Of a DNA stretch of 64,000 nucleotides, positions 11,489-60,861 are shown one piece after another. The first letter of the stretch is position 1; each line of letters begins with the position of its first letter. The stretch covers positions 248,001-312,000 of the IMG/VR virus record IMGVR_UViG_3300018080_008436; one strand, written 5' to 3'. The position numbers were made by a program, and so were the translations under genes. The notes below the pieces were generated by a model. It searched no databases. It saw only the letters and a program-made list of their open reading frames with translations, and was not told where the DNA came from.

Positions 11489-12411
11489 ATTATTTCCTCA
11501 TACTGTTTACACATATCTTCTTTCCCATAATCATAAAACGCCATACGATTCTGGCAAATTTTATAATGTATATAGTCACTCTGCAATACTCTTATTATCT
11601 CAAATAACTCTTCTGCATCTTTAAACGTCCTTACAAAATCCTTTGCATACTCAATACAAGCGTCAGCTTCGCTATGAATGAGAGGAATTAACCCACAACT
11701 CAGCCCTTCTGGTATATGGTTGGGGCCTGGTTCAAACAATGATGCTGATACATAAACATCATGCTCCCTTAGTAATTCTGGCAATGCATGATAAGGTTGA
11801 GCCGATATCTTTCGACAATACTGTAAACTACCTTTCATCGGCCTCCCTATAAAAGTGAATTGAGCAATCTGTGGATTTCTATTACAAAATCTATCCAATT
11901 CTTTGTAAATAGGATAACCCTTATATATGTTATCTGAGAAATGGTGAGTTACGATCTTTAGTGGGGACATTGGCCTTCTTGATCTATCCTCTCTATAAAA
12001 AAGAGTTCTATCGCTACCATTTCTAATGACAACCGAATTAGAAACATTCATCCCCTTATCTATAAAATACCCTCTGAGCCATTCACTTACAAATACAGTC
12101 TTGTCAGCAACCCTTTTATTAGATTGAATAATGAGATCATCCAACCCCTTGCTGTTTGGTCTATGAGCATCATTTTCATTGATTCGATGAATGACCTTAG
12201 CCCCTTTCTTCCTTTGCTCTTCAACTTCCTCCAAACTAAATGTAACGCTTCTATCACGAACATCCATCAGAACAATTACGTCAACGTCATTCGACAGATC
12301 AAAAACTACATCATGTCCTTTGCCAGAGAAATAGGCAGACAACATCCTAAGGACTTGATTCCCCCCTCCGTATGGACCATCTACTATTCTTCTGTTAAAA
12401 GCTATTTTCAT
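11485..12411 (-). CDS. Glycosyltransferase family 4
   Basis: GPYGGG, FVSEWL, SLFEPGPNHIPEGLSCG (E-x7-E). Confidence 0.8.
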   Translation of the reverse strand: MKIAFNRRIVDGPYGGGNQVLRMLSAYFSGKGHDVVFDLSNDVDVIVLMDVRDRSVTFSLEEVEEQRKKGAKVIHRINENDAHRPNSKGLDDLIIQSNKRVADKTVFVSEWLRGYFIDKGMNVSNSVVIRNGSDRTLFYREDRSRRPMSPLKIVTHHFSDNIYKGYPIYKELDRFCNRNPQIAQFTFIGRPMKGSLQYCRKISAQPYHALPELLREHDVYVSASLFEPGPNHIPEGLSCGLIPLIHSEADACIEYAKDFVRTFKDAEELFEIIRVLQSDYIHYKICQNRMAFYDYGKEDMCKQYEEII

Positions 12412-13168: not shown

Positions 13169-13795
13169 TTATTTGTTATAAAGTATGCATAGACCAAATT
13201 TGTCTCTTATAAACTCTATTCTTACATCGTCATCTTCATAAACGTCTTCTGTAACAACTTCAGATCCAAATATCTCTTCAAGAACATAAAGTTCCCATGC
13301 GGCATATACCTTCTTGTTCTGAAAATTGTTTGAAGCTCTCTTAAGAGCCTCATAGACATTCATAGAGATATCATGGGTCATGAAGTTAACCTCATTCTCC
13401 AAAGCTAATTTTACTAAATTCCTGGTCAGTATATATGGATGGGCATCAAGGAAAAGAAGGTCTGGGTTATATTTCTCAAAAAGTCCTTCCTCTTTCCCAG
13501 TTACATCCTCAACATGCAAAGTAAAGTCTTTCTTGTCCATGAACTTCACTTTGTCTTCAATATCCCAAGAGTGAATCTCAAGATCTATTTCCAGGTATTT
13601 TGCAATATCATAAAAAACTCTGGTTGAACATCCATACTGCACTCCAAACTCCAAAAGAACTTTGGGTCTATTCTCTTGGAAATATTCAAAAATACCTCTC
13701 ACTTCTTCTTTAGAAACTGTTTTGGCTTTTTTCAGTATCCTTGGCAATTGACTATTATCAAAAAAATCATCGAAATTCTTCATATTCTTCTCCAT
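13169..13795 (-). CDS. SAM methyltransferase (Methyltransf_24-like)
   Basis: LEFGVQYGCS, FLDAH, HD. Confidence 0.7.
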   Translation of the reverse strand: MEKNMKNFDDFFDNSQLPRILKKAKTVSKEEVRGIFEYFQENRPKVLLEFGVQYGCSTRVFYDIAKYLEIDLEIHSWDIEDKVKFMDKKDFTLHVEDVTGKEEGLFEKYNPDLLFLDAHPYILTRNLVKLALENEVNFMTHDISMNVYEALKRASNNFQNKKVYAAWELYVLEEIFGSEVVTEDVYEDDDVRIEFIRDKFGLCILYNK

Positions 13796-17482: not shown

Positions 17483-18910
17483 TTAATCTTCCCACCATTG
17501 ATCAACTTGCTCTAGTCCAAGACCTTTTAATTCTTGAATAGTTTCTTCTACAGATTTACTGCCATAAATTCCGTATGTGTTCTCCATTTCTTCGCAAAAA
17601 CCCCCAACCATTTTAAAAACTTGACACAAATACTGCCTTTCACTACTTCCAGCATCATAATAAGAGTCTGCTAATTCTCCACTTTCCCTTCTAAAAGCAA
17701 AAGAGAAACAATCTTGGCTGAATTCTGGATCATATGGATCAAGCTTTGAAATACAGAAAACACATGGATCTACTTCATCCGTTTTTAATTCCTGAAGGAG
17801 TCTCGCATTTTCTTCTGCCTTCACCAATACGTTGAGATCAAAAAACATCTTCTTGACCTCTTCCAGGTTATATGTCCCACCTTTGATCGTAACGGTTCTA
17901 TCAGGCTCAATCGTGTAAAATGACTCATCCTCTTCAGGTTCATCTGGAACAACTGGCGTTTTGGCGAAAAACGAATCTGGATACATAAACTGCATCCCAA
18001 GACGCTTCGCAAAAGTCTTATCAGTTGTTTGATCTCCAACCATAATGCATTCACTCACATTCAGCTTGTATTTGTAAATATAAGGAATGGCCATCCCTGA
18101 TTGAGGCTTACGGCAATAGCAACTTACTGGCGGAACCTTATGAGGACAATAAGAGACCTCAACATCATTACAAATTGCTAAAGTTGCATTCGTAACTTCG
18201 AAACACAACTCGGCACCTTTTTCAGTCAACTCGCCTTTTGCAATACCAGATTGGTTTGATACCCCAATAAGGTAATATCCAAGCTTTTTATAGGCCCGTA
18301 AGACCTCTCCCGCCCCTTTCCTTACTTTGATCTCTGTTGGCTTTGTAGGGTACTTCCCATTGCCTCCAACAGTCTCCCTCAAAGTACCATCATAATCAAG
18401 GAAAATTGCTTTGTTTGTAAAACCCTCCCTTGGTTCCCTTCTGAACACTCTTTTCTCCACATTTTCAAAACCTTCGTCTTTCGTCGGTTTTTCAAATTCT
18501 TTCTTCATTTTGAAAAAGACAGAAATAGGGAACATGTTCGGATCTTTCTTAACTTCTTTCAGATCCTCTTTGTCATAAAACACCTTGCCATATCGTTCCA
18601 TCATCCTCTGCAAAGCATTAATCTGACAATCTTCCACAGAAGTTGACATCCAAAGACAACTGATCGGAACATCATGCTTCTTACACATCTCAATAAAAGG
18701 CTTGCGCTTATCTGCTTGCATAAAAGTGCAATCAAGAACAACAGAGTTCCCATTTTTGAGAGAAGCCTCAAGTTTCGGCAACAAATCGAGTGTTCTCCCA
18801 CCCTCTTTATCTCGGCTTAAATACGCATATGTATGCTTCTTCATGATTTCCTTTACTGCCGAGCTTTTCCCACTTGCAGGGAATCCAACCGTCATGATTG
18901 CTTTTTGCAT
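17483..18910 (-). CDS. Polynucleotide 5'-kinase / 3'-phosphatase (P-loop + HAD-IIIA) with C-terminal extension
   Basis: GFPASGKS kinase; FLDYDGTL, SNQSG, CRKP, VGD HAD motifs. Confidence 0.85.
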   Translation of the reverse strand: MQKAIMTVGFPASGKSSAVKEIMKKHTYAYLSRDKEGGRTLDLLPKLEASLKNGNSVVLDCTFMQADKRKPFIEMCKKHDVPISCLWMSTSVEDCQINALQRMMERYGKVFYDKEDLKEVKKDPNMFPISVFFKMKKEFEKPTKDEGFENVEKRVFRREPREGFTNKAIFLDYDGTLRETVGGNGKYPTKPTEIKVRKGAGEVLRAYKKLGYYLIGVSNQSGIAKGELTEKGAELCFEVTNATLAICNDVEVSYCPHKVPPVSCYCRKPQSGMAIPYIYKYKLNVSECIMVGDQTTDKTFAKRLGMQFMYPDSFFAKTPVVPDEPEEDESFYTIEPDRTVTIKGGTYNLEEVKKMFFDLNVLVKAEENARLLQELKTDEVDPCVFCISKLDPYDPEFSQDCFSFAFRRESGELADSYYDAGSSERQYLCQVFKMVGGFCEEMENTYGIYGSKSVEETIQELKGLGLEQVDQWWED

Positions 18911-25618: not shown

Positions 25619-26953
25619 TTAGAGTCTGTTAGCCGCCTCTTCAGACAGCAATGATCTTACTCCATCTCTAAGAATAACATGGGCAGAGTTACTTGAATCT
25701 TTGAACGCATCCAATACAACTGAAAGACCATTTGTCCTACGATCCAAATATGGGTTATCTATCTGTTCAATATCACCAGTTAGAATAACCTTTGTATTCT
25801 CTCCCGCTCTTGTTATGATCGTTTTTATCTCAAGTGGAGTAAGATTTTGAGCTTCATCGATAATGATATATTGATTATGAATACTCCTACCTCTTATATA
25901 AGTTAGAGGCTCAATAAAGATTTTATCACTAAGCTCAGCTATCTTTTTCCCACTCATCTTCTTCTGACCCTTTTTCTCAGGTGATTTTGCTTTATTACTA
26001 TGAACAATCTCCAAAGCATCATAAATGGGTTGCATCCATGGGTCTAACTTCTCATTCACATCTCCTGGTAAAAAACCAATATCTCGACCCATTGGTTGAA
26101 CAGGTCTACTAATGAGCATTTTTTCATACCTTTCTTCCTGCTCTACCATATATTCACCAGCGGCTGTTGCAAGCAAGGTCTTCCCAGTCCCTGCCATTCC
26201 TACCAAACATACCAAATGGATATCATCATCTAACAATGCATCCAAAGCAAAAGCTTGCTCTCTATTTTTTGATTTAATCTTTAATGATGGAGGTAAAAAA
26301 TCTAATCTCTCTACCATAGATCTGTCCTTACTGACTCTGGCAAGCATATTTTTGCTTTCATCTGGACTTTGGACCATTAGGTAGTAATTGCCCCAAGGAA
26401 TGTCATCATCATCAAATACCCACTCTACAGGACATTCATCCTTTAGTTTAATTTCAGCATATGTTTTTCTATTAACCTCAACAGTACGGAATCCTTCATC
26501 AAGAATAACACTTTCGCATACTCTGGTTGCTTCATAGCATTCAGCCCTGATCCCAAGAGCATTCGCTTTCAGTCTAACGTTAATATCTCTTGAAATAACT
26601 ATACACTCATTCTCTGGCTCTTGAGCCTTCATAATATCTGCAATATGAAGTACATGAAAATCGACATCCTTCTCCTTTCTATAGGTTCCTAAGTTGCCAT
26701 TATAAATAACTCTTATTTGACCTTCCCTATCATCTCCTAATCTAACCCCTTTTCTTAAATCCCCCAATTCTCTGAATTTGTCGAGTGATCTAGAAACTTG
26801 ACGGGAGTTTCGCCCTAACGCCCCATTGTCTCTTTTGAATGTGTCTAGCTCTTCAATCACTCCGATTGGAATAATCACAGTATGTTCCTCAAAACTGAAT
26901 ATCGCTTCAGGATCTTGCAACAGAACATTTGTGTCAATAACGAAATTTTTCAT
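25619..26953 (-). CDS. phoH: PIN-PhoH ATPase (PhoH2/YlaK-like)
   Basis: VIDTNVLL PIN; GMAGTGKT, RGRS, DEAQN, TGDIEQID. Confidence 0.93.
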   Translation of the reverse strand: MKNFVIDTNVLLQDPEAIFSFEEHTVIIPIGVIEELDTFKRDNGALGRNSRQVSRSLDKFRELGDLRKGVRLGDDREGQIRVIYNGNLGTYRKEKDVDFHVLHIADIMKAQEPENECIVISRDINVRLKANALGIRAECYEATRVCESVILDEGFRTVEVNRKTYAEIKLKDECPVEWVFDDDDIPWGNYYLMVQSPDESKNMLARVSKDRSMVERLDFLPPSLKIKSKNREQAFALDALLDDDIHLVCLVGMAGTGKTLLATAAGEYMVEQEERYEKMLISRPVQPMGRDIGFLPGDVNEKLDPWMQPIYDALEIVHSNKAKSPEKKGQKKMSGKKIAELSDKIFIEPLTYIRGRSIHNQYIIIDEAQNLTPLEIKTIITRAGENTKVILTGDIEQIDNPYLDRRTNGLSVVLDAFKDSSNSAHVILRDGVRSLLSEEAANRL

Positions 26954-26971
26954 TATTCCTCCTTTATGGAT

Positions 26972-27334
26972 TTATTTTGGCGTGTTCTTCTTTTTCTCTT
27001 CTTTCTGGGAAGCCTTCACTTCATCCATAGAAGAGTAAACTTTTGTGACTTTGCCAAAAACTTTTTTGGTCCAACCATTGATTCGACCATGATTGTTTCC
27101 AATTAAACAACCACGTTTATCGTTTTTAGCTTTAACTAGGTGAGTATATAGGTTCCCTCGAACCTTGCAGTATACCATATCCCCGACTTCGGTATCCTGC
27201 CATGTGGTGGGTACAAGCTTTACTGGTTGCTTGCTTTTGATGAGTGGAGTCATGCTGTTTCCAGGTTCTCGACTGATGATCGACTCCCCTTCCAACAACT
27301 TATTGACTTTCCAATTATGCATCCATTCTTCCAT
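26972..27334 (-). CDS. S24/S26 peptidase-like protein
   Basis: GNSMTPLI..GDMVYC..THLV. Confidence 0.55.
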   Translation of the reverse strand: MEEWMHNWKVNKLLEGESIISREPGNSMTPLIKSKQPVKLVPTTWQDTEVGDMVYCKVRGNLYTHLVKAKNDKRGCLIGNNHGRINGWTKKVFGKVTKVYSSMDEVKASQKEEKKKNTPK

Positions 27335-28152: not shown

Positions 28153-29064
28153 TTGCCACTTTTACTTGAACAAAAACAAAAACGGCTTACTAATATGGAT
28201 CTAATAGACTTCGGTTCTGGACACCCAAAACATTCAAAGTTTTTTGAATACTTTATCTCACAAACAGAGAATATTAAAATCAAACGATATCTAAGTATCG
28301 GTTCTTATAACCCAAAGAAACTCATTGATAAAAAAGTAGGATACTTTCAATTCAGAATCAATGAAGTGCTATGCTCCATGGATAATGGAGATTTCATAAA
28401 CATAGATCTCGACACCCTTAGAGAACTTAATACCGAAATACTTTTTATCTCTCAAATAAGAAAAGATCAGAAAGAACAGCTATATGAGCTTAACAGAAAT
28501 TATGGGTATCGAATATATCCATTCATCCTGATACCGAGATATCACAAAACGATATATCCCATTTTTGCAAAATATGCTAAAGAATACACATACATGCTAT
28601 CCAAAAACAAAAAATATGTAGCCCATATGAGATATGGACTCAGACATAGGTGGCATAGAACTCCTTGGGTTCGATTTACTAATCAACATAACACCCATTT
28701 TCCTCGCGAAAAACTAATAGGAGAACCTTTCTTCCAAAGATTATGTGACTGCGATTGGGGAGTCAGTCTAAAAGGCTCTGGTGATGATTACAAATGTATG
28801 AGAGAAACTGAGTTTGCAAACTTTGGCATACCAATGGCCCTAAACTTCGAACCATATTATCCTTTCAAATTTGAAAAAAACGTTCACTATAAATTGCTAC
28901 ATAAGCCAGAAGACCTCCAGGACTTAATTTACTCAGAATACTCTGAGCTTTATAAATTCTCACAAGCGTCTAAAAAACTTGGAGAAAAATACTTCTCCCC
29001 ACAAGGTTGTCTTGGATTAATGAAGTCTCTTTTGAATCAAAAGAAGTACAACATAGAATTTTAA
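28153..29064 (+). CDS. Hypothetical protein, possibly GT-like C-terminus
   Basis: 303 aa ORF; SLKG..KCMRETE..GIP. Confidence 0.5.
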   Translation: MPLLLEQKQKRLTNMDLIDFGSGHPKHSKFFEYFISQTENIKIKRYLSIGSYNPKKLIDKKVGYFQFRINEVLCSMDNGDFINIDLDTLRELNTEILFISQIRKDQKEQLYELNRNYGYRIYPFILIPRYHKTIYPIFAKYAKEYTYMLSKNKKYVAHMRYGLRHRWHRTPWVRFTNQHNTHFPREKLIGEPFFQRLCDCDWGVSLKGSGDDYKCMRETEFANFGIPMALNFEPYYPFKFEKNVHYKLLHKPEDLQDLIYSEYSELYKFSQASKKLGEKYFSPQGCLGLMKSLLNQKKYNIEF

Positions 29065-29065
29065 T

Positions 29066-29142
29066 TGGTGGCAACGAGAGGAGTCGAACCTCCGACGCTC
29101 TGCTCTTCAGGCAGACGCTCTTCCACACTGAGCTACGTTGCC
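29066..29142 (-). tRNA. tRNA-Phe(GAA)
   Basis: Cloverleaf, anticodon loop CTGAAGA, CCA. Confidence 0.93.
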
Positions 29143-29145
29143 ATT

Positions 29146-29221
29146 TGGTGGGATGCCTCGGTATCGAACCGAGTTCTCTGGTTTTTCAGACCAGCGCAAT
29201 GACCTCACCTGCTCACATCCC
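29146..29221 (-). tRNA. tRNA-Phe(GAA), divergent second copy
   Basis: Loop CTGAAAA, CCA. Confidence 0.9.
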
Positions 29222-29224
29222 AAT

Positions 29225-29288
29225 AAAAAACCCCGACCAGAAGTCGGGGCCAAAATACACGAAAAAAACCCCGACGAATGTCGAGGTT
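29225..29288 (-). terminator. Two tandem intrinsic terminators of the Phe attenuator
   Basis: AACCTCGAC-ATTC-GTCGGGGTT-T5 and GCCCCGAC-TTCTG-GTCGGGGT-T5. Confidence 0.85.
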
Positions 29289-29326
29289 AAAAAGATCTAA
29301 ACAACACTTTGATCTAACTACCTCGA

Positions 29327-29371
29327 CTAGAGGTGGCTAAAAAATCGAAAGATGTTGTTTAAGTTGTTCAT
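29327..29371 (-). CDS. Leader peptide MNNLNNIFRFFSHL (Phe attenuator)
   Basis: AAGGA RBS, TTT CGA TTT TTT, stop inside 1:2 hairpin. Confidence 0.8.
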   Translation of the reverse strand: MNNLNNIFRFFSHL

Positions 29372-29396
29372 AATGTAAAATCCTTTTGTTGCCCCT

Positions 29397-29427
29397 ATTA
29401 TAGGGTATCATCCATGCTTTTCAAGTC
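29397..29427 (-). promoter_or_regulatory. Sigma70-type promoter GACTTGAAA-N16-TATAAT
   Basis: Same motif at four non-coding RNA loci. Confidence 0.8.
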
Positions 29428-29439
29428 AGAACTGCAAAA

Positions 29440-29691
29440 TTAATCCAATTCAAGCATATCAATAAGATCAGCCTTACTTCTATATCCTGCAAACTTCAAC
29501 TGAGGATCATCCACAAAAGACATAGGAACGGCCATAATGCCGAGTCTTTGAGCTTCTTTGAGGTTATCTGGATCTTCAGTCGGCTTAAGCTCTACTTTTA
29601 CTTCTGGGTACTCTTCTACCAGTTTGTCAAGCTCTTTCTTGAGTCTCTTACATGGGATACAGTGCTCTCCTGTAAAAACTGTTACTTTCAT
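29440..29691 (-). CDS. Thioredoxin/glutaredoxin-like protein
   Basis: CIPC, cis-Pro AVP. Confidence 0.85.
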   Translation of the reverse strand: MKVTVFTGEHCIPCKRLKKELDKLVEEYPEVKVELKPTEDPDNLKEAQRLGIMAVPMSFVDDPQLKFAGYRSKADLIDMLELD

Positions 29692-29703
29692 TTTCTTTCT
29701 CCT

Positions 29704-30486
29704 TTAGGTTAAAAAATCTTTGTCAACGTAATGCACCATGAACTTACATACAGTATCGATAAGTTCATCAGGCATTCTTTTAAAACATTCGTTCACAAAC
29801 TCATCTGGAACGTTTTTGTAATATGCATGAGCAATTGAGCCAGCCATAGCCGCAATGGTATCGCTGTCTCCACCCATCATTACTGCTTCTCTTATTGTAC
29901 TCTCAAAATCCTCAGAATACAAGAAAGCGTATACAGCTTGCGGAACTGTCTCCTGGCAACTACAATTAAATCCTAGATGCTCAGAGGTCAAAATAAGGTC
30001 CGTTCTGTATCCAAACGACTCTACTGCTTCTCTAATTTCTTGCTTTGTCCCTCCATGCCAAGCTATGAATGTTGCCAAAGCAATTGCTTGAGCACCTTTA
30101 ACTCCCTCTTCATGATTATGAGTCGCATCAGCACTCTTTTTGGCCTCTGCTAGAACATCCTTTTTAGATCTGCAATAGAAAGCAACAGGGCTAACTCTCA
30201 TCGCAGACCCATTGCCATAACTATTATACCCTTCTTCTTGCTCACTTAAAGCCCACTCTTTGAAAGCACTACCATACCCTCTATCTTTGTAATTTCTATA
30301 GTATTCACGAATAGATTGTGAATAGTTTCCTGAATTCATCAAAACATCTGCTACTGCGCAGGTTAGAACAGTATCGTCAGTAAAAATACACTTCTTGTTG
30401 AATAGAAGAAAATTTTTGGTTTTGGGGTGTCTTTTTGGGCCTTCCCAACGAGAGCCTATTATGTCTCCTAAAATCGCGCCTATCAC
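29704..30486 (-). CDS. ADP-ribosylglycohydrolase (DraG/ARH family)
   Basis: GAILGDIIG, TDDT, GNGSAMR, GGDSDT; GTG start after AAAGGAGA. Confidence 0.92.
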   Translation of the reverse strand: MIGAILGDIIGSRWEGPKRHPKTKNFLLFNKKCIFTDDTVLTCAVADVLMNSGNYSQSIREYYRNYKDRGYGSAFKEWALSEQEEGYNSYGNGSAMRVSPVAFYCRSKKDVLAEAKKSADATHNHEEGVKGAQAIALATFIAWHGGTKQEIREAVESFGYRTDLILTSEHLGFNCSCQETVPQAVYAFLYSEDFESTIREAVMMGGDSDTIAAMAGSIAHAYYKNVPDEFVNECFKRMPDELIDTVCKFMVHYVDKDFLT

Positions 30487-33762: not shown

Positions 33763-33811
33763 ACAATTATTCCGACACTTATCCCGACATTTTGTCGGGA
33801 TTCAGAAAAAC

Positions 33812-33926
33812 GCCAGTGTATTGCTCATTTATACTACCTCACAAAGTTTAGAATGCTGAATAGAACCTTATTCAAGTTCACTTTTAATAGTACTGTATGG
33901 GTGGGATTCGAACCCACATCTCTGGC
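33812..33926 (-). ncRNA. Permuted tRNA-like RNA carrying CAGCA module
   Basis: GCCAG/CTGGC ends, T-arm first (GTGGG TTCGAAT CCCAC), GAACTT-GAATA-AGGTTC-TATT-CAGCA. Confidence 0.5.
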
Positions 33927-33927
33927 T

Positions 33928-34003
33928 TGGTATCCCCAACGGGAATTGAACCCGTATCTGTTGGTTGAGAACCAACTATCCTAGACCGTTAGACGATGGG
34001 GAC
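33928..34003 (-). tRNA. tRNA-Glu(CTC)
   Basis: Loop TTCTCAA, CCA. Confidence 0.93.
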
Positions 34004-34010
34004 ATTAAAA

Positions 34011-34138
34011 ATGAGTCGGAAGGAATCGAACCTTCATTCCCTGGTTGATTTATTAAACATCAAATAGTTGCTGGAACGAAACTTATACAGTTTCACTTGG
34101 TTTTATGTCCAGGAGTTCTACCATTAAACTACGACCCA
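34011..34138 (-). ncRNA. tRNA-like RNA whose anticodon loop is replaced by a ~65-nt insert with CAGCAA module
   Basis: Intact acceptor, D and T arms, CCTGG/CCAGG stem, no encoded CCA. Confidence 0.7.
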
Positions 34139-34158
34139 AGTTGTATCTCTAATGAGAT

Positions 34159-34235
34159 TGGTCGGGTATGCAGGATTCGAACCTGCGATCTCATCATCCC
34201 AAATGATGCGCCTTACCAGACTAGGCTAATACCCG
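34159..34235 (-). tRNA. tRNA-Pro(TGG)
   Basis: Loop TTTGGGA, CCA. Confidence 0.93.
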
Positions 34236-34239
34236 ATAC

Positions 34240-34406
34240 AGAAGTGTTTTATCCTGTTAAACTATCCCCAACAAGATCGTACTTTAAGTCATCTGACACT
34301 AACTCATTTCTGACCCCAGAATATATTTTATTGTTTTGAATGTCAGTTCGTAACAACTACTTTACACTCTTAAGCCGAGGCTGGGACTCGAACCCAGATC
34401 TCTCCT
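34240..34406 (-). ncRNA. Circularly permuted tRNA mimic (YrlA-like topology)
   Basis: Order AGGAG, T-arm, CCTCGGC, long loop, GTTGGGG, D-arm, CTTCT. Confidence 0.6.
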
Positions 34407-34408
34407 TT

Positions 34409-34499
34409 TGGTGACGCAGACGGGATTCGAACCCGCAAAGGAATCTCTTCCTACCAGATTGAAAGTCTGGTTACTTCAGGCCAATTTGTATACTGCGCC
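34409..34499 (-). tRNA. tRNA-Glu(TTC) with long variable arm
   Basis: Loop CTTTCAA; AGGAA-GAGA-TTCCT extra arm; CCA. Confidence 0.85.
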
Positions 34500-34856: not shown

Positions 34857-34865
34857 ATGGACAAT

Positions 34866-34931
34866 AAAAAAGCCCTCCTAACGCAAGCTAAGAGGGCACA
34901 AAAAAAGCCCTCCCGCTCATGGCAGAAGGGC
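34866..34931 (-). terminator. Two tandem intrinsic terminators of the Glu/Pro attenuator
   Basis: GCCCTTCTGC-CATGA-GCGGGAGGGC-T7 and GCCCTCTTAGC-TTGC-GTTAGGAGGGC-T6. Confidence 0.88.
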
Positions 34932-34953
34932 CAAAATCATAGTTATGATCTAA

Positions 34954-35031
34954 CTACAGATCGGCTGACCTCCTGCCAAAGGCTGGCGGTTCTTCTCGTT
35001 CTGGTTCTCGAATGTACATGTAGTTGTTCAT
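34954..35031 (-). CDS. Leader peptide MNNYMYIREPEREEPPAFGRRSADL (Glu/Pro attenuator)
   Basis: AAAGGA RBS; 4 GAA + 3 CCR within 8 codons. Confidence 0.8.
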   Translation of the reverse strand: MNNYMYIREPEREEPPAFGRRSADL

Positions 35032-35056
35032 AACAAATTTTCCTTTCGTTACCCCC

Positions 35057-35087
35057 ATTATAAACCATCCTAGAGACTTTTCAAGTC
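35057..35087 (-). promoter_or_regulatory. Promoter GACTTGAAA-N16-TATAAT
   Basis: Shared motif. Confidence 0.8.
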
Positions 35088-55929: not shown

Positions 55930-55937
55930 TCAGGCAC

Positions 55938-55970
55938 AAAAAAAGCCCAAGCTCCTTAGAGCCTGGGCTT
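55938..55970 (-). terminator. Attenuator terminator of tRNA operon 3
   Basis: AAGCCCAGGCTC-TAAG-GAGCTTGGGCTT-T5. Confidence 0.88.
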
Positions 55971-55988
55971 CGTAAATCTGCTTATCTA

Positions 55989-56069
55989 TCAGAACATGCG
56001 ATAGCGCAGATCAGAAGCCCTGTGGCTCCAATCGCGTCTAATAATATGCATGTCTCTAACAACGTTCAT
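55989..56069 (-). CDS. Leader peptide MNVVRDMHIIRRDWSHRASDLRYRMF (multivalent attenuator)
   Basis: TAAGGA RBS; codons match the downstream tRNA set. Confidence 0.8.
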   Translation of the reverse strand: MNVVRDMHIIRRDWSHRASDLRYRMF

Positions 56070-56166
56070 TTTTCTTAAATCCTTATTCGATTTAGTTTTT
56101 CAACTTACCCTCATTAGTCACATTTGATTTGAGTTTTTCTCAGATCTGTACCAAGAAGTTATTATC

Positions 56167-56197
56167 ATTATAAGCCTTATTCAGAGTATTTCAAGTC
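56167..56197 (-). promoter_or_regulatory. Promoter GACTTGAAA-N16-TATAAT
   Basis: Shared motif. Confidence 0.8.
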
Positions 56198-60381: not shown

Positions 60382-60447
60382 AAAAAAAAGACCAGTCAAA
60401 CTTGGTTCCGAGTCCCATCTCGCGTATGGAACAAAGTCTAACTGGTC
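60382..60447 (-). terminator. Long hairpin + T8 between RNA array and TROVE-like gene
   Basis: GACCAGTTAGACTT..AAGTTTGACTGGTC-T8. Confidence 0.75.
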
Positions 60448-60460
60448 AAAGTTAAAAATC

Positions 60461-60818
60461 GGAACAGGTTAGCAATTTTGGTTTTCATTTCAAGTGAAAG
60501 TTTTGGTTGCTGTAACTAACCTTCTATCCTAAATTAAAAATTTGAACAGACTGACTTGTTTTTTTTAGCATAAAAAATTTTGAGTTGCTGAATGCAGTCT
60601 TATATCAAATTGTTTTTCTAAATTTTCCTTTTTCTTGTTTTCAAAGAAACAAGTGAAACAGCTTGGGTTTTCCATCCTTTATTTCAGACCTCGATGAATT
60701 TGGGTCCTCAAATTTATTTTTAAAACCCTCTCGACTGGGTTCTCGTTTTATTTCTGTCAGGGCGACTCTGACGCTCGTTTTATCGTGTTTTTTGGTTGCA
60801 GTAACCAAGCTTTATTCA
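60461..60818 (-). ncRNA. Array of three structured RNA units with helix-(C/T)AGCAA-type motif
   Basis: Units 60461..60529, 60540..60610, 60654..60818 with covarying stems; third has ACTGCAA. Confidence 0.7.
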
Positions 60819-60830
60819 GTTGTTGGTTCC

Positions 60831-60861
60831 ATTATAAGGATTACGAAAAACTTTTCAAGTC
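60831..60861 (-). promoter_or_regulatory. Promoter GACTTGAAA-N16-TATAAT
   Basis: Shared motif. Confidence 0.8.

Follow-up and report, generated by a model that had tools for sequence, protein, structure and literature searches.

The window analysed here, a stretch of 64,000 nucleotides from the IMG/VR virus record IMGVR_UViG_3300018080_008436 (positions 248,001 to 312,000 of that record), carries on its minus strand a short leader ahead of two phage tRNA-Phe genes, which is probably a ribosome-mediated attenuator gating these genes through two serial terminators coupled by a relay of alternative hairpins. Specifically, the leader combines a promoter, a Shine-Dalgarno (SD) sequence, a small open reading frame (ORF) with clustered Phe codons and six RNA segments, of which the inner ones can pair with either neighbour. 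Confidence is high that such an attenuator would act on the tRNA-Phe genes through the first terminator (T1), and it is lower for the coupling of the second terminator (T2), which is the favoured explanation of that element by the available folds and energies. An earlier note, made from the letters of the DNA, had proposed a Phe attenuator at this place. The anatomy of the site, folds with a ribosome mask, six codon-matched paralogs in the same phage and six orthologous leaders ahead of tRNA-Phe bear this proposal out, and they add what the earlier note had lacked, namely the regulated genes and the genome-wide set to which the unit belongs.

The Phe leader

All elements of the attenuator are present on the minus strand (coordinates in Table 1). 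The sigma-70-type promoter matches 11 of 12 consensus positions, is the sole strong promoter within 28900-29800 and is one of eight sites in the phage with the conserved motif CTTGAAAAG-N13-YTATAAT; a promoter scan of the region gave no second promoter between the terminators and the tRNA-Phe genes. Downstream of the SD, the leader ORF reads ATG AAC AAC TTA AAC AAC ATC TTT CGA TTT TTT AGC CAC CTC TAG. Segment 1 overlaps leader codons 4-14, Phe codons included, and forms the 5' strand of a long hairpin with segment 2 (1:2), which the earlier note had described as directly following TTT CGA TTT TTT and containing the stop codon; the fold agrees and places the stop codon in the hairpin loop.

The remaining complementarities that had been proposed are likewise exact. 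The first eight nucleotides of segment 2, GUCGAGGU (29327-29320), form the antiterminator with segment 3, the corresponding DNA GTCGAGGT (29327-29320) being the exact reverse complement of ACCTCGAC in the 5' arm of T1, whose stem holds one internal G.U pair. Segment 5 in turn has an alternative partner in segment 4, as GTCGGGG in the 3' arm of T1 and CCCCGAC in the 5' arm of T2 are exactly complementary. Folding of the whole leader gives the long 1:2 hairpin, T1 and T2 at -55.7 kcal/mol, with z = -6.6 relative to 200 dinucleotide shuffles. The unit thereby shows the features of ribosome-mediated attenuators that can be read from sequence: an SD with an ORF, clustered codons, a terminator, an exclusive antiterminator in the thermodynamic model, and tied target genes.

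The first of the two tRNA-Phe genes is atypical and may be a divergent phage-type tRNA-Phe retained beside the canonical copy. ARAGORN calls neither of its counterparts in related contigs (L040 18772-18850; L050 3852-3930), despite a GAA anticodon loop and an encoded CCA. The tRNA-Phe genes of the window are followed by a convergent ORF of 303 residues (28153-29064, plus strand) with no Pfam match.

One architecture, seven tRNA operons

The order of promoter, SD, short ORF, terminator or terminators and tRNA operon occurs seven times in this phage, as found by reading upstream of tRNA groups together with a promoter-motif search, and the tRNA genes of the phage are grouped by amino acid. An AAGGA/GGAG element precedes the leader ORF in all seven units. 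Leader codons are cognate to the operon that they precede in 79 of 160 cases, compared with a mean of 24.6 over the 5040 leader/operon permutations, and the true pairing is the unique maximum; when matches are scored at codon level with wobble rules, the corresponding values are 77 and 22, and the true pairing is again the unique maximum. Up to seven different cognate amino acids are represented in one leader, and even Ile codons are split, with ATA in the leader of the tRNA-Ile(UAU) operon and ATT in that of the tRNA-Ile(GAU) operon. The absence of certain tRNAs from the record led to the prediction of a Gln/Asn unit, which was then found 17 kb outside the record on a larger contig. By contrast, the Gly/initiator-type (Gly/Met) tRNA cluster of the phage has a plain promoter without a leader. 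This context of seven units matched in codons and tRNAs is the strongest argument that the small ORFs would be translated sensors.

The Glu/Pro attenuator is the second double terminator of the phage with complementarity between segments 4 and 5 (4:5). The U-tract of T1 is followed by conserved bases, UUUUUUUGUGCC / GUGUCC, in all seven leaders and in most orthologs, and in the double-terminator leaders of Glu/Pro and of L040 the GUGCC at this place starts the 5' arm of T2. TAG closes the two double-terminator leaders, Phe and Glu/Pro, and the stop codon of the other five is TGA or TAA. The phage also encodes a tRNA with a CUA anticodon (ARAGORN 'Pyl'; G000 197395-197469, minus strand), which has its own TTGACA/TATAAT promoter and no leader. 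A link between the TAG-ending leaders and this tRNA through recoding is not claimed, as the link is not kept in relatives, the Phe leader of L040 ending in TAA.

Orthologous leaders in related phages

Related metagenomic phage contigs were reached via homologs of two neighbour proteins (DUF2828, 79-80% identity; ADP-ribosylglycohydrolase (ARH), 62-81%) and exact-sequence contig look-ups. Promoter-pattern scans of IMG/VR, JGI metagenomes and GTDB genomes gave only the phage's own contigs and chance matches, and single-protein locus searches returned the own contig and one distant ARH (30% identity) without tRNAs. Phe leaders stand ahead of tRNA-Phe in six further lineages. The peptide block FFRFF is present in four of them (L040, L043, L048 and L050) and is conserved there at the nucleotide level as TTTTTTCGATTTTTT with the following CGAGGTG, and L046 has FSFF. 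The SD and the ATG are kept in the six orthologs as well as in the six paralogs. Terminator stems vary by lineage, and in each lineage, masked folds with a ribosome stalled at the Phe codons still pair the 5' arm of T1 with sequence downstream of these codons. An RNAalifold consensus of the six orthologs recovers the 1:2 core and T1, with compensatory pairs at 5 of 22, from too few sequences for formal covariation. Additionally, the Arg-type leader (with an ortholog in L036) and the Glu/Pro-type leaders are conserved, and L040 has double terminators with 4:5 pairing at both its Phe and its Glu/Pro locus.

Switching of the leader in silico

Equilibrium folding of the full leader was dropped as a model, as a stalled ribosome still gave both terminators; folds of truncated transcripts and barrier estimates were used instead. 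The ribosome was represented by masking -15 to +12 of the A site, and the transcript was cut before segment 4 or before segment 6. With the cut before segment 4 and a stall at codons 2-11, GUCGAGGU is freed and pairs with ACCUCGAC (8 base pairs plus an inner hairpin, -18.5 kcal/mol), and eight of the nine T1 arm nucleotides are paired upstream. This number drops to zero without a ribosome or with one at H13 to the stop; masked folds leave segment 3 free for T1 when the ribosome is absent or sits on H13, L14 or the stop codon. With the cut before segment 6, the 4:5 helix is present in every fold in which segment 4 is free. The folds thus toggle between 1:2 with 3:4 (and 5:6) on one side and 2:3 with 4:5 on the other.

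For the Phe leader, helix energies are -11.2 (2:3), -12.9 (T1), -15.3 (4:5) and -16.1 kcal/mol (T2), and direct-path barriers are 10.4 (2:3 to 3:4), 9.3 (4:5 to 5:6) and 10.0 kcal/mol (3:4 to 4:5). In this model the 4:5 relay state is trapped about as well as the classical antiterminator state. Converted with customary rough prefactors, the barriers would correspond to lifetimes of tenths of a second to seconds, comparable to the dwell of the polymerase at a U-tract, and such lifetimes suggest a partial rather than absolute protection from T2. The Glu/Pro leader, whose stem sequences are unrelated to those of the Phe leader, behaves alike in masked folds: a stall at E9-P15 yields 2:3 and 4:5, and a ribosome at R20 or the stop lets T1 form, which leaves T2 free.

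The available data favour a model in which the unit reads the supply of Phe-tRNA(Phe). If this is ample, the ribosome would reach the TAG and cover segment 2, T1 (3:4) would form and most polymerases would stop; the few polymerases past T1 would then meet T2 (5:6), which could form because segment 4 is locked in T1. If Phe-tRNA(Phe) is scarce, a stall on TTT CGA TTT TTT would melt segment 1, so that segment 2 could pair with segment 3. The freed segment 4 would subsequently capture segment 5 once it is made, leaving segment 6 partnerless while the polymerase crosses the second U-tract. Read-through would give a precursor RNA that RNase P would process into tRNAs, and the outcome would be a demand-driven negative feedback on tRNA-Phe supply, in which T2 would multiply the stringency of the off state at little cost to the on state. 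Each of the seven units would be tuned by its leader codons to the tRNAs under its control.

Weighing the explanations

For T2, a coupling to T1 competes with a back-up role. The attenuator could be real and T2 an uncoupled back-up terminator from a tandem duplication of T1, stopping the same fraction of polymerases in both states, with 4:5 as a by-product. T1 and T2 indeed share GUCGGGGUU in their 3' arms without any difference, and a single stem position separates their 5' arms, so duplication alone would yield the 4:5 complementarity. T2 is dispensable, being missing from five of the seven orthologous Phe leaders and two of the four Glu/Pro leaders, and the Phe lineages with two terminators do not group as sisters in the ARH tree (moderate support, 83-88), a topology that fits independent duplications. 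T2 was hence gained twice or lost several times, and repeated duplication of T1 could give the complementarity without selection. At equilibrium, furthermore, T2 beats 4:5. Against the back-up stands that an unregulated second terminator would lower the induced level as much as the basal level, so that no range would be gained, and several features of the terminators count in favour of a coupling. The only tandem pairs in a set of 31 strict terminators from the genome are those of the Phe and Glu/Pro leaders. When the 3' arm of one terminator was paired with the 5' arm of another in all 930 ordered pairs, 0.32% reached -14 kcal/mol or better and 0.75% reached -12, and the T1/T2 pairs of the Phe and Glu/Pro leaders scored -14.8 and -12.6 kcal/mol, respectively. 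Despite its longer loop, 4:5 exceeds T1 in stability in three cases out of four; the four comprise, besides the Phe leader of the window, its Glu/Pro leader (T1 -18.9, 4:5 -15.4, T2 -18.6 kcal/mol), the Phe leader of L040 (-13.3, -14.1 and -15.3) and the Glu/Pro leader of L040 (-15.7, -17.0 and -17.7). In the Phe and Glu/Pro leaders, a U in the 5' arm of T1 forms a Watson-Crick pair in 2:3 and a wobble in T1, and the 4:5 core is all Watson-Crick; a wobble in T1 beside an all-Watson-Crick 4:5 core holds for both double-terminator Phe lineages. The L040 T1 3' arm GUCAGGG is perfect with segment 5 (CCCUGAC) and wobbles with its own 5' arm, whereas L048, the nearest relative of L040 on the ARH tree and a lineage with a single terminator, has the perfect arm GCCAGGG, a difference that is exactly the C-to-U change fitting segment 5. 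T1 is also weak in the double-terminator Phe lineages, at -12.4 and -13.3, and only L045 (-12.7) joins them among the three weakest in the family, compared with -15.3 to -22.5 kcal/mol in the remaining single-terminator lineages. Together with the folds cut before segment 6, which always take 4:5 when segment 4 is free, these features rank the relay above the back-up as the explanation of T2: the relay is favoured with modest confidence and the back-up is rather unlikely. The idea of the earlier note that one stall would disarm both terminators thus stands at the level of sequence analysis, where 4:5 folds, is stronger than T1, has a barrier close to that of the primary antiterminator and recurs in the Glu/Pro leader and in L040; it does not stand as a general property of the family, in which five of seven lineages have one terminator.

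Two further explanations would do away with the attenuator altogether. The hairpins might be ordinary or insulating terminators of upstream genes, such as the thioredoxin-like ORF at 29691-29440, with the tRNAs expressed by leaky read-through or a phage processive antitermination factor, the ORF untranslated and its Phe codons accidental. Phages do use processive antitermination, and three Phe in 13 codons are by themselves only moderately improbable. However, a promoter lies between the thioredoxin-like ORF and the terminators and would fire into them, and the terminator-only explanation accounts neither for the codon/tRNA match across seven units nor for the conserved SD and start codon, the conservation of TTTTTTCGATTTTTT at the nucleotide level in four relatives and the presence of an exact 8-nt complement for 2:3 at the stop codon; it is accordingly judged improbable. 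T-boxes are well-known tRNA sensors that work through a terminator/antiterminator choice, and a T-box-like RNA could bind uncharged tRNA-Phe via a specifier codon and the tRNA 3' end, with no translation involved. This explanation is the least credible of all, as there is no T-box (RF00230) match at the gathering score in the window and none at E <= 10 in 29000-29500, a good SD, an ATG and an in-frame stop are placed as in classical attenuators, and leaders with up to seven cognate amino acids cannot be single-specifier T-boxes.

Several points nevertheless weigh against a ribosome-mediated attenuator with a relay, in addition to the likeness of the two terminators, the scattered occurrence of T2 and its absence from most relatives. 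At equilibrium the full-length RNA adopts 1:2, T1 and T2 even with a stalled ribosome, so that both the antiterminator and the relay would depend on kinetics. The exit barrier of 4:5 is modest (9.3 here and 7.0 kcal/mol in L040), and the relay may shield only a fraction of polymerases. The mask model is crude and gives antitermination also for stalls at the Asn/Leu codons 2-7, and the window leader holds just three Phe codons, at the low end for this class of attenuators. As more tRNA is no cure for amino-acid starvation, the sensed variable, tRNA amount or charging, is only inferred. The four public runs with related DNA gave DNA-derived contigs only, with no natural variants in the attenuators and no RNA.

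Relation to known attenuators and wider meaning

The closest counterpart is the attenuator of E. coli pheST-ihfA with the leader PheM, which senses Phe-tRNA(Phe) via ribosome stalling. PheM, like the phage Phe leader, has 14 codons and an IFRFF block, and in both leaders the antiterminator segment begins at the stop codon and U7-GU comes after a GC-rich terminator. The two differ in their targets, a synthetase in E. coli and tRNA-Phe genes in the phage, and in the number of Phe codons (five and three, respectively); the phage unit is furthermore phage-borne, has a second, interlocked terminator and is a member of seven units with a common promoter type. Two relatives carry an ORF of 87-90 residues for the PheS N-terminal domain (PF02912; E = 8e-11 and 2.5e-14) directly after tRNA-Phe (L040 18958-19230; L048 2568-2831), a stand-alone ORF that lies behind its own promoter-like site; in the phage of the window, the convergent 303-residue ORF occupies this place. 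Together with the likeness to pheM, the PheS-domain ORF suggests capture of a cellular pheM-pheS (pheST) locus as a possible source of the Phe unit, which would give the system a traceable origin.

The E. coli pheA attenuator (PheL; Rfam Phe_leader RF01859) likewise combines a Phe-codon leader peptide with a terminator/antiterminator choice, and it controls a biosynthetic enzyme where the phage unit controls tRNA genes. The phage Phe leader is not a member of that family, with 15.6 bits and E = 7 against a gathering score of 55, and no known leader family of Rfam is found at its gathering score in the window. The chain of six segments has a parallel in the his leader, which is reportedly arranged as A:B, C:D and E:F against B:C and D:E. 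The phage Phe leader has this topology in common (1:2, 3:4 and 5:6 against 2:3 and 4:5), and in both, melting of the first pair propagates along the chain; the middle hairpin is not a terminator in his, whereas in the phage it has its own U7 tract, so that one stall is predicted to switch two terminators. Tandem riboswitch/terminator arrangements are known to sharpen a response, and there each unit senses independently, unlike the interlocked phage terminators. T-box leaders, for their part, resemble the phage unit in tying the expression of translation-related genes to tRNA status through a terminator/antiterminator choice, and they are ribosome-free. The E. coli genes pheV and pheU have the same product, tRNA-Phe(GAA), and a plain promoter a few nucleotides upstream, without leader ORF or terminator; the pheV sequence thus speaks against an attenuator-like leader at that gene.

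Phage tRNA genes are usually seen as constitutive add-ons that fix a codon-usage mismatch or replace host tRNAs lost to degradation or cleavage during infection. The present sequence suggests instead that a phage may gauge codon by codon which tRNAs the ribosome lacks and transcribe only the matching operon. Attenuation, known for amino-acid biosynthesis and synthetase genes of cells with one or two sensed amino acids, would thereby extend to tRNA genes, to viruses and to leaders that sense up to seven amino acids, and the seven units provide a testable model for how a huge phage could control 60 or more tRNA genes. Full-text searches of the literature gave no leader-peptide attenuator ahead of tRNA genes or in phage tRNA arrays, although journal coverage was incomplete and a prior description is possible. 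The far-reaching version of these findings, for and against which the weights are about equal, is that leaders gate almost all tRNA operons in a lineage of huge phages, as the first ribosome-mediated attenuation of tRNA genes and the first in a virus, and that the Phe unit arose from a captured pheST locus and evolved a two-terminator relay. Additionally, an interlocked double terminator would offer a compact low-leak design with preserved induction, which is relevant to RNA engineering.

Table 1 Elements of the Phe unit, the other leader-tRNA units of the phage and orthologous Phe leaders. Positions refer to the window unless another contig is named; MFE, minimum free energy.
Feature	Position	Strand	Leader peptide	Details
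Phe unit: promoter, sigma-70-type	29397..29424	-		-35 TTGAAA 29424-29419; spacer 16 nt; -10 TATAAT 29402-29397
Phe unit: Shine-Dalgarno AAGGA	29381..29385	-		9 nt ahead of ATG
Phe unit: leader ORF	29327..29371	-	MNNLNNIFRFFSHL	14 codons + TAG; tRNAs Phe x2; orthologs in six related contigs
Phe unit: regulatory codons	29339..29350	-		TTT CGA TTT TTT (F R F F)
Phe unit: segment 1	29330..29361	-		5' strand of long 1:2 hairpin; MFE fold
Phe unit: segment 2	29298..29327	-		3' strand of 1:2; truncated/masked folds
Phe unit: terminator T1 (segments 3+4)	29261..29288	-		AACCUCGAC-AUUC-GUCGGGGUU 29288-29267 + U7; -12.4 to -12.9 kcal/mol
Phe unit: terminator T2 (segments 5+6)	29225..29251	-		GGCCCCGACU-UCU-GGUCGGGGUU 29251-29229 + U6
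tRNA-Phe(GAA) number 1	29146..29221	-		44.5 bits; atypical; CCA encoded; 3 nt past T2 U-tract
tRNA-Phe(GAA) number 2	29066..29142	-		65.8 bits; canonical; CCA encoded
Terminator-like hairpin	28980..29001	-		would close the two-tRNA operon
Glu/Pro unit	34857..35085	-	MNNYMYIREPEREEPPAFGRRSADL	Glu/Pro array; promoter 35085-35057; ORF 35031-34954; T1 34932-34906; T2 34897-34872
Arg-type unit	55930..56195	-	MNVVRDMHIIRRDWSHRASDLRYRMF	tRNAs Arg x4, Trp, Ile(GAU) x2, Val(GAC), Asp x2, Met, His; ORF 56069-55989; single terminator 55968-55945
Units outside the window (Thr/Lys, Val/Ala/Ile, Cys/Tyr/Leu/Ser, Gln/Asn)	G000 11521-11763, 26854-27076, 106106-106430; L004 108-303
Thr/Lys unit			MYATTKTTKTTKTTKKRVASGGLLS	tRNAs Thr x3, Lys x3
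Val/Ala/Ile unit			MKKRVEIAIAVVAVAVVADGQGFSALSG	tRNAs Val, Ala, Ala, Val, Ile(UAU)
Cys/Tyr/Leu/Ser unit			MKSLSLSLCSSYLSLRWTGLCVQRT	tRNAs Cys, Tyr, Leu, Ser
Gln/Asn unit			MSVQVQQNNQNNQALEGFGRLFSA	tRNAs Gln, Asn, Asn, Gln
Phe ortholog	L040/L042		MINLNNSFFRFFSFLRLARW	two terminators
Phe ortholog	L043		MSILTNNFFRFFTPSLVEVVIV	one terminator
Phe ortholog	L048		MTVLNNNFFRFFSLLVCRGE	one terminator
Phe ortholog	L050		MKSLNNSFFRFFTPSLIEVVVG	one terminator
Phe ortholog	L046		MKHLITENFSFFTHLVCQGETQVFCT	one terminator
Phe ortholog (weak)	L045		MKITSYISIRFSTAQVFLG	one terminator

The phage and its genomic setting

The virus record from which the window is taken has 296 kb, 38.5% G+C and 46 tRNA genes, all on one strand. 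An IMG/VR contig (476 kb) and a metagenome contig (525 kb) contain the same DNA, which points to a phage of roughly 0.5 Mb, and the larger contig has at least 60 tRNAs and a gene for transfer-messenger RNA (tmRNA). Neighbour genes are phage-like and include a RecD2-type helicase, PIN-PhoH, thioredoxin, ADP-ribosylglycohydrolase, LAGLIDADG, DHH and polynucleotide kinase. No close relative was found among GenBank phages, and a search for the hallmark gene Terminase_6N gave nothing. Logan contigs from three public runs (two sediment metagenomes and one seawater metagenome) contain the window stretch without differences, and a fourth run contributed a single 151-nt fragment of a relative.

The record is listed in IMG/VR as a provirus trimmed to 296 kb. 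A leader-tRNA unit of the same type lies 17 kb beyond the trim, and further tRNAs outside the trimmed record are Arg(UCU), Met and Leu(UAA) at G001 19.5-25.5 kb, the Gly/Met cluster at 77.5-81.5 kb and Pro at about 109.8 kb. The DNA that was trimmed off hence seems to be phage-like at least in part, which casts doubt on the provirus boundary. Genes for translation and RNA repair cluster near the tRNA operons (L015 8487-8867; L040 11196-11684; window 17483-18910; L037 10493-11515), among them the tmRNA gene beside the Gln/Asn operon, IF3 in relatives, a polynucleotide-kinase-like ORF in the window and an RNA ligase (PF09414) in a relative.

A promoter of the same type as that of the leaders also precedes a transcript of about 470 nt without an ORF (window 60390-60859, minus strand), which ends in a long terminator hairpin directly upstream of a DUF2828/DUF7788 gene (60350-58917; PHROG 'RNA-binding protein'). 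Its promoter and first bases are kept in L037-L039, and it has no Rfam match; it may be a structured non-coding RNA partnered with the DUF2828/DUF7788 protein. Finally, several tRNA genes bear insertions of about 45-55 nt with the common motif GAACTTGACAAtAAGGTTC...CAGCAA, as at window 34011-34138 (minus strand). Further insertion sites are seen in the inter-tRNA gaps at about 33763-34410, at L040 ~13480-13590 and at L043 ~20-140; the insertions are conserved in relatives and have an intron-like look. ARAGORN misses these genes, and Rfam aligns an insertion-bearing tRNA of 128 nt at 46.7 bits.

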